DNA of 64,000 nucleotides, taken from the NCBI RefSeq assembly GCF_006345805.1, contig NC_043013.1:39308001-39372000 (forward strand), written 5' to 3'. Made by a program: the position numbers and the translations under genes. Under the pieces are notes generated by a model. It had not been told where the DNA came from, searched no databases, and worked only from the letters and a program-made list of their open reading frames with translations. How positions within the stretch are numbered: the first letter of the stretch is position 1; every line of letters starts with the position of its first letter. This DNA is from Octopus sinensis. Lineage: Eukaryota. Shown one piece after another: positions 18,501 through 21,500 of the stretch.

Positions 18501-21500
18501 ACTCTACCAATATATGTAATTTGAACGATTTATAAAAAGAAATAAAAATATTATGCCCACGTTTGCATGACTTTCGGTATAACCCTCGTAAATACACAGA
18601 CATCTGAAAAGTAAATATTCGACATCATTTTCATAAGATTTATTTTTCTACAAACCAAATAATGTCATTTGATGGGTTGAAATACCAGATCTACTATTTA
18701 GTGCAGATACCTTGTGCAGCTTTTAATGTTGTCATCGTTTTGATGCATCGTAGTAATGAGTCGTGTCCGCACAAAGAAAGGCGAGTATATTTACTTTTGA
18801 GATGTCTGTGTGTATATATGTGTATGTGTGTGTGGTGTCTTTCTTAACTTACATACCTGTTCCCTGGGCATTCAGCAATATATTCAATACTGAAATGAGA
18901 AGACGAAATATATACAATTATATAGAAATAAAATTGGTATTAATCCAGAAGCTGCTTCACTACAAATAGTAGAGCTGCGACTTCTAGTTCTCAAGAGTTG
19001 GGTCCTTTTCACTAAAAGTGACGGAATGTCTTATTTATTTGAAGTTCGTGCAAGTTATCCTCAGTAATCATTATGATTCATTAATATATTTAATTTGTAT
19101 AAGTTATTTACCTTCTGTTTTAGGGATTTTAATAGAGCGTCTTATAACTGGTGCTTATTTAATCGATCCCGAAAGGATGAAAAGCAAAGTCCACTTCGGC
19201 GGAATTTGAACTCAGAACGTAGCGGCAGACGAAATACCACTAAGCATTTCGCCTGGCAAGCTAAAGTTTCTGCCACCTTCATAAAATAACAATATTGAAC
19301 GTAATAATTTTAAATCATTTTTTATTTCGTAGGACAAGAAATAGGTCAATCATAAAACAATAATATTCTTTTCTACTCTCTGCCTAATATCCGAAATTTT
19401 GGGGGATGGGGCCAGTGGATTAGATCGACCCCAGTACTGGTACTTAATTTATCAACCTCAAAAGGATGAAAGGCAAAGTCGATCTCGGCGGAATTTGAAC
19501 TCAGAGAGTAAACACAGACGAAATACCTATTTCTTTACTGCCCACAAGGGACTACACACAGATGGGACAAACAAGGACAGACAAACGGATTAAGTCGATT
19601 ATATCGACCCCAGTGCGTAACTGGTACTTATTTAATCGACCCCGAAAGGATGAAAGGCAAAGTCGACCTCGGCGGAATTTGAACTCAGAATGTAGCGGCA
19701 GACGAACTACCTATTTCTTTACTACCTACAAGGGGTTACATACAGAGGAGACAAACAAGGACAGACAAACGGATTAAGTCGATTATATCGACCCCAGTGC
19801 GTGACTGGTACTTATTTAATAGACCCCGAAAGGATGAAAGGCAAAGTCCACTTCGGCGGAATTTGAACTCAGAACGTAGCAGCAGACGAAATACCGCTAA
19901 GCATTTCGCCCGGCAAGCTAACGTTTCTGCCACCTTTATAAAATAACAATATTGAACGTAATAATTTTAAATCATTTTTTTTTTGCAATATAATATCAAT
20001 GATATTCAAGATTTTTCTTTACGATTCAATAGTGATATATTGTGTTATCTCATAAGTAATGTGATTTTAGATAGTAGCAACGGGCGAAATGCTGCTTTAC
20101 ATTTCATGCAGCGTTCTAACGATTCAGTCAGGCCACCGCCTCAATAACAACAACAACAACAACAACAACAAAACTAAAACAACAACAACAACAATAACAA
20201 CAATAATAATAATAATTAATTCTTTTATTTGCTACAGGGGCTCACAGAAAACATCTTTAAATGATATGCAACAACACGAGACAAAAACAGGACGATACAA
20301 TGGGTTTTATAGCGAGTAAACAATATAAATAACAATTAAAAATCAAACAAATTAAAACTCCCAATGAGGGGGCCTTTAAGGTCCTCGGGGAAAAACCCGC
20401 AAAAACCACGGGTGCCTGATCAACAGGCCAAGAGCCCTTCTCCTTTTATTCTTCACAGGTGTATGCTCAGAATTGGTCCTTTCCTACTGGCCATTCATCC
20501 AACAAACTTCAACAAACATTCAACAAACTTGCCAGAAGGCAACACTTTCTTGTCCACACTTAACTTCCTTTTCAAGTGAAACTTGAAAAAGTTGATGAGG
20601 GCTTGGCCAAAGAGGAAAGTGTCTGTCTTTAGCCCTTTCAAGCGGGTCCACCATACTACCTCTTTCGCTACAGCCCCTAGACATATAAAAATTGCCTGCC
20701 CCTCCCGGCCAAAAGAGGACGGCGGGGCAATATTGACAATGGATTCAGATGATAACCGGATCCGTTCTACATGCGACAGCAGGTGTTTGACATAAGCTTA
20801 CAGGTCAGCAAAACTCATGCACTGGACTAAGGTGTGCAGAACGGTTTCATAGTTCTGGGCGCACCTCGGGCAGGCCCGTCTGACGCCACTTCCACGCTTG
20901 TAAAGTTTATCTCGAACAGGCAGCACCCCTCGGTAGCACTGTCAGGCAAGGGATTTCTGGAAGTTATCCATAAGCCCAGGCCCGAAAGTTCTCGGAAACA
21001 GAGCGGTTAGTTGATCTTCATCGACGCCCAGAGTTTTCCAGAGAACGGCGTCACACTTTCCTGCCACTAGCCCCCTTAATAATAATAATAATAATAATAA
21101 TAATAATAATAATAATAATAATAATAATAATAATAATAATATAATAATAAAATAATAAACCAGTTGATCATGTCCCTTAGTGGCTGACGATATGTGCATC
21201 TCTGATCACGAGCAGAAGTAGTGGGGGAGCATCATAGCCATGTGTTGAGAGGGATTCTTTGGGGTTTGAATAATTCACCTCTGGAAACATGGGTGGTTCT
21301 TTCAACATCCTTAAACAACCCTTATTCAGGGACCTTTTGAGCGGGATGGGCTACTCAACTTGAAGAAAATTCTAACTGGGCCCAACCTGCAAGGTCATGT
21401 GCTGTTTATCTTGATATGAGATCACCATGTCGCGCACATATGGTTGTGATGCATGTGCCTGGTGTACCTTTATCAGACGGGTAGTCATGATGGGTATATT

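Follow-up and report, generated by a model that had tools for sequence, protein, structure and literature searches.

How can a short and mostly intronic segment be almost identical in two genes whose products have diverged widely? This question is raised by a window of 64,000 nucleotides from Octopus sinensis (NCBI RefSeq assembly GCF_006345805.1, contig NC_043013.1, positions 39,308,001–39,372,000 of the forward strand; coordinates below count from its first letter unless another locus is named). The window contains two tandem paralogs on the minus strand, gene A and, upstream of it in the direction of transcription, gene B. An earlier, sequence-only reading had described an island of near-identity around the second exon of both genes, including an internal microsatellite of equal length, and had proposed that recent gene conversion homogenizes the secretion signal while the remainder of the protein diverges. 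According to the present analysis, the island is most probably a tract of recurrent interlocus (non-allelic) gene conversion between these same-strand paralogs, with a probability of about 85%, and the earlier reading was correct as to conversion but not as to what it targets.

A near-identical island in two old paralogs

The near-identical island is real. Positions 18552–19027 of gene A and 46696–47171 of gene B, 476 bp each, differ by 7 substitutions (at 18686, 18701, 18720, 18908, 18979, 18987, and 19005 in A coordinates) and no indel, so that the equal length of the microsatellite is also confirmed. Similarity continues at lower identity on both sides; the corresponding block of the window self-comparison made with the Basic Local Alignment Search Tool (BLAST) covers 18497–19050 and 46645–47194 and is 95.8% identical over 554 columns. 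The homogenized tract therein measures ~490–550 bp. The pair sits on a collinear series of much weaker A/B matches offset by ~25–28 kb, which therefore represent a tandem segmental duplication. Over the 3862 columns of a chained A/B alignment, identity is 98.5% in the island versus 81.8% in the remainder, where individual blocks range from 69 to 84%, with one at 91%. Under a binomial model at the background rate, at most 7 mismatches among 476 positions would arise with a probability of 9e-32. The longest identical run (187 bp) and the best-scoring segment (403) were reached in none of 2000 column permutations, for which the maxima were 89 and 118, respectively. Apart from the microsatellite, no third copy of any part of the island was found in the 64-kb window.

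Gene A corresponds to isoform X2 of LOC118766662, and the translation of its six spliced exons is exactly that of XP_036366106.1 (P0001; 277 amino acids). Gene B is intact: its six exons are homologous to those of A, with canonical GT-AG sites and an open frame of 275 codons, and its orthologue in O. bimaculoides is P0003. All introns of both genes are in phase 1 and of the GT-AG type. The products of A and B are small, secreted, and built of three PAN/Apple domains. In both genes, exons 3 and 4 score 32–35 bits against Pfam PAN_1 (PF00024; cut-off 21.4), and exon 6 scores 15.5 bits, under that cut-off. Protein identity between A and B is 42% in exons 3 and 6, 50% in exon 4, and 74% in the short exon 5. 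Synonymous divergence (dS) between the two genes is 0.67, with a ratio of nonsynonymous to synonymous rates (dN/dS) of 0.49, in agreement with the old divergence that the sequence-only reading had placed around the island. Within the island itself, 33 bp are coding (exon 2) and 443 of the 476 bp are intronic. A (TG/TA)n microsatellite divides it into a 5′ core that holds the exon and a 3′ core that is wholly intronic (Table 1).

The island in three octopus species

The island and its surroundings were compared with the orthologous loci of O. vulgaris (L002, 88 kb, assembly GCA_951406725.2) and O. bimaculoides (L001, 37 kb, with many N gaps), which together with the window amount to 189 kb of octopus sequence searched. 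The A and B copies are denoted sinA and sinB in O. sinensis, vulA and vulB in O. vulgaris, and bimA and bimB in O. bimaculoides. Flanking regions were compared at exons 3, 4, and 6 in all three species and at exon 1 and intron 1 in all copies except vulB, for which these parts lie outside L002. In these flanks the sequences cluster by paralog, with identities of 63–85% between A and B and 79–100% between orthologs. Most orthologous blocks of O. sinensis and O. vulgaris are 97–99% identical (dS ~0.02), and orthologous intron blocks of O. sinensis and O. bimaculoides are mostly 81–88% identical (dS 0.12–0.21). Since the flanks group by paralog and the A–B dS of 0.67 compares with 0.12–0.21 between species, the duplication predates all three species and took place long before the compared octopuses split. 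The island behaves differently: the region-by-region comparison with orthologs, a check that the sequence-only reading had suggested, shows that the flanks keep their orthology whereas the island does not.

O. vulgaris also carries two islands (B at 584–1138 and A at 27587–28137 of L002). A four-way alignment over 18552–19044 contains no site fixed between A and B. Singletons number 5 in sinA, 4 in sinB, and 5 in vulA, the last with an additional 6-bp microsatellite change, and there are none in vulB; the microsatellite is equally long in sinA, sinB, and vulB and 6 bp shorter in vulA. All six pairwise Jukes–Cantor distances of the core fall between 0.009 and 0.022 in a star-like pattern without A/B structure. 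Past 18548–18552 on one side and 19044–19048 on the other, each difference is specific to A or B and common to both species, and the boundaries are thus the same in both. At site 18987, the derived base is present in vulA, sinB, and vulB, and the ancestral base is kept in sinA. A cluster of changes at 19002–19007 is shared by the paralogs within each species, and with O. bimaculoides as the outgroup, the O. sinensis state is the derived one. Because this state is found in both O. sinensis paralogs and in neither O. vulgaris paralog, at least one exchange followed the split of these two species, and the homogenization in their lineage dates to about the time of the split. Collectively, the grouping of the flanks by paralog, the lack of any A/B site in the islands of two species, and the species-specific cluster in both paralogs strongly support the recent gene conversion that had been proposed.

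In O. bimaculoides, homogenization was independent and older and affected only the intronic 3′ half. Over the 3′ core, bimA and bimB agree at 247 of 258 positions (95.7%), and the O. sinensis and O. vulgaris copies match them at 226–230 of 258 (88–89%). A lineage-specific state is present in both paralogs at 22 sites, whereas sites that distinguish A from B are absent; this signature of concerted evolution requires a separate homogenization in the O. bimaculoides lineage. The tract begins at the (CA/TG)n repeat. In the 5′ core, bimA and bimB are only 70–82% identical. The O. sinensis and O. vulgaris sequences match bimA at 134–137 of 151 positions (89–91%) there, a degenerate copy in bimB (block x) at 125–128 of 150 (83–85%), and the functional exon block of bimB (block y) at 91–93 of 126 (73%). 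The exon-2 peptide is VLNILLKAQGT in bimA, AVNPVVNDLGT in bimB, and VLNILLNAQGT in both O. sinensis copies. Both O. sinensis copies thus have an A-type 5′ core and an A-like peptide, which indicates that, in the lineage of O. sinensis and O. vulgaris, sequence of the A type took the place of B-type sequence and that, to judge from the aligned sequences, the exon part was transferred from A to B. No B-type remnant of exon 2 was found in gene B of the window or in the O. vulgaris locus, in keeping with replacement and not with an added copy. Overall, repeated overwriting has affected ~500 bp surrounding the 33-nt exon 2.

The exon-2 blocks of bimB stand in tandem (L001 10570–11130), with a functional exon in y and a degenerate pseudo-exon resembling A in x; the two are joined within the 5′ arm of the inverted repeat listed in Table 1. 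The bimB contig is rich in gaps, and its blocks lie between N gaps in an order other than that of sinB, reflecting either rearrangement or misassembly.

Table 1. Positions in the window of the island, its parts, the adjoining elements, and the two genes (B counterparts in brackets)
Feature	Positions	Strand	Remarks
Island core, gene A copy	18552–19027	−	End of intron 1, exon 2, start of intron 2; 7 substitutions and no indel relative to B; 0 A/B-fixed sites across O. sinensis and O. vulgaris
Island core, gene B copy	46696–47171	−	5′ half of A type: 89–91% to O. bimaculoides A, 73% to the native B exon-2 block
Whole high-similarity block with lower-identity edges, A	18497–19050	−	BLAST 95.8%; past 19044–19048 and 18548–18552 all differences paralog-specific in both species
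Whole high-similarity block, B	46645–47194	−	BLAST 95.8%
5′ core, 154 bp	18846–18999 (46990–47143)	−	End of intron 1, microexon and its donor; homogenized only in O. sinensis/vulgaris
3′ core, 259 bp	18552–18810 (46696–46954)	−	Wholly intronic; homogenized in the O. sinensis/vulgaris and O. bimaculoides lineages
Imperfect (TG/TA)n microsatellite	18806–18838 (46950–46982)		Just 3′ of the exon-2 donor, dividing the island into halves; read from the sequence
Inverted repeat, arm 1	18589–18618 (46733–46762)		30 nt, 90% complementary to arm 2, 168 nt apart
Inverted repeat, arm 2	18787–18816 (46931–46960)		Arms bound ~228 bp of the 3′ core
Derived cluster	19002–19007	−	2-bp deletion and substitutions; in both O. 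sinensis paralogs, in neither O. vulgaris paralog
Divergent patch at 3′ edge of island, A, type 1	18524–18551	−	In sinA, vulA, bimB
Divergent patch, B, type 2	46672–46695	−	In sinB, vulB, bimA
Segment S, B	46502–46644	−	Adjoins island; 87.4% to L001 26341–26499; no other match in the window
Tc1/mariner-type transposase fragment	17711–18529	−	Abuts 3′ edge of island in A; Pfam DDE_3, E = 3e-9
Gene A (LOC118766662, isoform X2)	9358–24095	−	Exons 24095–24068, 18889–18857, 16905–16654, 13864–13631, 10639–10550, 9554–9358
Gene B, intact paralog upstream of A	31880–49526	−	Exons 49526–49499, 47033–47001, 43769–43518, 39847–39611, 37923–37834, 32067–31880
Gene A exon 2	18857–18889	−	33-nt phase-1/phase-1 microexon, (V)LNILLNAQGT, residues 10–20 of XP_036366106.1; acceptor tttcag, donor gtatgt
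Gene B exon 2	47001–47033	−	Same sequence as the A microexon

Gene conversion and competing explanations

In the O. sinensis/vulgaris lineage, B received A-type sequence over the exon and both of its intron flanks and thereby acquired the second half of the signal peptide of A. The island may then have perpetuated itself: once homogenized, it would be the sole substrate left for A–B recombination, and later exchanges would reuse its boundaries. That the boundaries are sharp and alike in two species can be explained because only the island offers long identical runs (187 bp), the flanks presumably being too diverged. Initiation of exchanges may be aided by the (TG/TA)n repeat at the center of the island and by the 30-nt inverted repeat. 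Published conversion tracts average from 50 to several hundred bp; the minimal efficient processing segment is ~200 bp long, and the rate falls steeply near 80% identity (PMC3924818; bioRxiv 10.1101/135152). The island, with its ~0.5 kb and 187-bp identical run, fits these figures, and the flanks do not. It shares with the interlocus conversion and concerted evolution described for human duplicates (bioRxiv 10.1101/135152) and reviewed more generally (PMC3924818) a tract of a few hundred bp, paralogs that are closer within a lineage, preserved orthology of the flanks, exchange that depends on identity, and introns affected as much as exons. However, the octopus tract persists or recurs in old paralogs (dS 0.67, flanks 63–85%), in which models predict that conversion has effectively stopped, and its boundaries coincide in at least two or three lineages.

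The human fetal globin genes offer a further likeness. Slightom, Blechl and Smithies are said to have described in 1980 a conversion between the G-gamma and A-gamma genes for which a (TG)n simple repeat within intron 2 forms a boundary. Both systems have tandem paralogs, a tract over exon and intron, and (TG)n at a tract boundary, the O. bimaculoides tract starting at (CA/TG)n. In O. sinensis and O. vulgaris, by contrast, the repeat is found midway along the tract and is only a presumed initiator, and A and B are far more diverged.

Several points weigh against this account. The first exchange would have joined sequences only ~75–80% identical, a range in which conversion is rare (PMC3924818). 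The independent event in O. bimaculoides rests on an imperfect assembly of bimB, with gaps and blocks out of order. A third paralog elsewhere in the genome might have been the donor, the search having covered 189 kb, and the microsatellite or the inverted repeat is only a putative initiator. Finally, one simple A-to-B event is insufficient at the 3′ edge of the island, where a patch of 24–28 bp and the neighboring segment S pair sinB with bimA and sinA with bimB.

The patch occurs in two old types, and segment S adjoins the island only in sinB/vulB and bimA, with gene A of the window lacking it; this pairing is the reverse of the orthology seen elsewhere and resembles a reciprocal swap between lineages. 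Two scenarios fit. In one, the A-to-B tract at first spanned at least 690 bp, and A then lost S at the insertion of a Tc1/mariner element. In the other, S and the type 2 patch are native to B and were transferred from B to A in O. bimaculoides. Therefore, exchanges went both ways or extended over different lengths, and the main conclusion on conversion is unaffected. The Tc1/mariner fragment in question is also present in O. vulgaris A and is absent from O. bimaculoides A. A 27-mer shared by the two genes (18497–18523 in A) was considered as a terminal inverted repeat of this element and rejected, as no matching opposite end or second copy was found; the fragment merely abuts the island.

A reading in which the 3′ core goes beyond a passive tract of conversion is doubtful. 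According to it, ~230 nt with a 24–30-bp stem, placed directly after the microexon donor and the (CA)n repeat, would form a module, functional or recombinogenic, that has stayed alike in A and B ever since they duplicated, in several lineages. The element bounded by the inverted repeat, folded as RNA, has a 24-bp closing stem and a free energy of −63.6 kcal/mol (z = −5.4), and its arms are retained in O. bimaculoides, albeit without compensatory changes. Rfam, searched with 18300–19300 on both strands up to E = 1, gave only chance-level matches far under the gathering scores. If the module were real, it might act as a hotspot of conversion, with the hairpin and the repeat setting off the exchanges. 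Alternatively, it could be a double-stranded pre-mRNA structure governing splicing of the microexon, B-to-A read-through splicing, or adenosine-to-inosine (A-to-I) editing, for which cephalopods are known. Conversion spilling from it into the exon would now and then swap signal-peptide halves between the genes.

A one-off replicative copy-and-paste, by template switching or by a local re-duplication replacing the B segment, is unlikely. The extra A-like block x of bimB, in tandem with the native y and with its junction inside an arm of the inverted repeat, does show that duplicative insertion of an exon-2 block has occurred. A single event cannot, however, give the O. sinensis cluster, the derived base in three of the four copies at 18987, and the separate homogenization in O. 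bimaculoides, and gene B of the window has one exon-2 block and no leftover of B type.

Purifying selection alone is very unlikely. Under this view, the island would have a non-coding function, for instance as an enhancer, a splicing enhancer, or an intronic RNA, and would never have diverged since the duplication. The view would agree with the homogeneity of the 3′ core in two lineages, with its stable fold, and with the few differences between O. sinensis and O. bimaculoides in parts of it; in addition, microexons, of which the island holds one, often depend on flanking intronic signals. Yet between species the island diverges neutrally, at 88–91% identity to O. bimaculoides and 97.9–98.9% to O. 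vulgaris, like the flanks and dS. Constraint cannot yield 22 lineage-specific substitutions in both paralogs together with no A/B site. Moreover, only ~84% of the 60 nt preceding the exon are retained relative to bimA, and the stem has neither compensatory changes nor an Rfam match.

A contrasting signature of true constraint is found at the same locus. A non-coding block of ~130–150 bp, located ~0.8 kb 5′ of each ATG (~24880–25020 in A and ~50118–50258 in B), is 95–100% identical among sinA, vulA, sinB, bimA, and bimB, that is, across both species and paralogs. It is a candidate promoter or enhancer element shared by the two genes. With both patterns at one locus, selection is therefore separable from conversion. 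The island resembles conserved non-coding elements in its high non-coding identity between paralogs, but its identity between species is not above background, and the real element of this kind is the upstream block.

Still less credible is a young dispersed repeat, similar to a miniature inverted-repeat transposable element with 30-nt terminal inverted repeats, that inserted or spread into both genes. The 3′ core is indeed bounded by a 30-nt inverted repeat, in a region full of debris of Tc1/mariner elements and short interspersed nuclear elements (SINEs). Against this, there are two copies in the 64-kb window, two in the 88 kb of O. vulgaris, and copies at the orthologous sites only in the 37 kb of O. 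bimaculoides. They occupy the same intron/exon position in both genes of three species and contain the in-frame exon 2, weaker homology extends past both edges, and no clear target-site duplication was seen in the sequence. The sequence-only reading had named such dispersal as a possible undoing of the conversion idea, and no further copy was present in the octopus sequence searched. A 69-amino-acid open reading frame on the plus strand of the island gave no candidate copy in a set of 5.8 billion proteins, a result that is uninformative since such frames are probably not called as genes. Least probable of all is an artefact in which one paralog was corrected with reads of the other, likewise a refutation named by the sequence-only reading, for although near-identical segments within diverged duplicates are a classic site of polishing cross-talk, the two copies keep 7 private differences, the independent O. 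vulgaris assembly shows both islands, identically bounded and with private differences of their own, among them the 6-bp microsatellite change, and a related pattern exists in O. bimaculoides.

Recurrent gene conversion thus remains the preferred explanation, and the locus provides a three-species example of a small conversion island in tandem paralogs that are otherwise too diverged to recombine. It is one of the few documented cases of interlocus gene conversion in cephalopod genomics, for a process already known and a mechanism that is not new. Where paralogous introns of octopuses are highly identical, comparison with orthologs is needed before constraint or selection on a signal peptide is concluded, and trees built from exon 2 of this pair would mislead.

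Signal peptide, gene models, and other repeats

The proposal that conversion homogenizes the secretion signal was not borne out. Only 33 of the 476 bp are coding, and the label "signal-peptide exon" holds in part: the island exon encodes residues 10–20 of the signal, and residues 1–9 are encoded by exon 1, which lies outside the island, upstream by 5.2 kb in A and by 2.5 kb in B, and is not homogenized. The exon-1 peptides differ (MRKRLLFCF in A vs. MWKHLVFYF in B), and the exon-1 region is ~81% identical between A and B. In addition, the O. bimaculoides tract is purely intronic, and the exon-2 peptides of that species differ. The effect on the signal peptide would be a by-product of conversion rather than its target.

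The accompanying claim of a diverging payload agrees with the data, as the mature exons evolve fast, with dN/dS from 0.5 to ~1. For gene A, dN/dS of the mature exons is 0.28 between sinA and vulA and 0.68 between sinA and bimA. For gene B (exons 3–6, 43769–31883), it is 1.9 between sinB and vulB, a value based on few substitutions, and 0.96 between sinB and bimB; the mature part of gene B is under relaxed or diversifying selection. The suggested likeness to toxin superfamilies is superficial only, because the whole signal peptide is not conserved between the paralogs. As in the conotoxin superfamilies (PMC3862624), the products are secreted, signal and mature parts lie on separate exons, mature exons evolve fast, and introns contain simple repeats. 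Unlike them, only two genes are involved here, the half of the signal peptide encoded by exon 1 is unconserved, and the O. bimaculoides exon-2 peptides differ while the intron is homogenized. The conotoxin pattern is ascribed to exon-specific substitution rates and not to a 0.5-kb conversion tract (PMC3862624). The protein family is tiny, with 31 representatives at E ≤ 0.001 among 1.84 billion, and a literature search combining octopus with PAN/Apple domains, and additionally with salivary gland, found no paper linking them.

Current annotations merge A and B and thereby hide an intact secreted PAN-domain paralog. NCBI isoform X1 (XP_036366105.1, P0033) is a read-through model that joins gene B (37834–39847; exon 5 and a portion of exon 4) to A exon 2 (18857–18889) and A exons 3–6. 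B–A fusion models are annotated likewise in O. bimaculoides (P0004) and O. vulgaris (P0005), and a search with the B query returned fused gene models in both species (P0004, P0003, and P0006 in the former; P0005 in the latter). Although gene B is intact, O. sinensis lacks a separate protein record for it. The island was also considered as an alternative promoter or first exon and rejected in this role, as isoform X1 starts outside it and uses the island microexon as an internal exon.

Other repeats of the window include a minisatellite in intron 5 of gene B (33353–35797), which consists of ~117 repeats of a 20-bp unit, TGTATATTTGTATGTATGTG, with 86% matches. SINE-like units of ~180 bp, with 75–89% mutual identity, are dispersed or arranged in short tandem arrays at 10910–11227, 17037–17400, 19347–19935, 42183–42565, and 58019–60434. 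An ARAGORN scan of the window found no intact transfer RNA gene. Four repeat pairs of 93–96% identity lie off the A/B diagonal: 15482–15894/21158–21570, 28607–29137/30059–29522 (inverted), 55896–56283/60468–60854, and 7235–7380/11980–11836 (inverted). One of these pairs, an inverted one, is located in the intergenic region between B and A, and all four are probably copies of young transposable elements.

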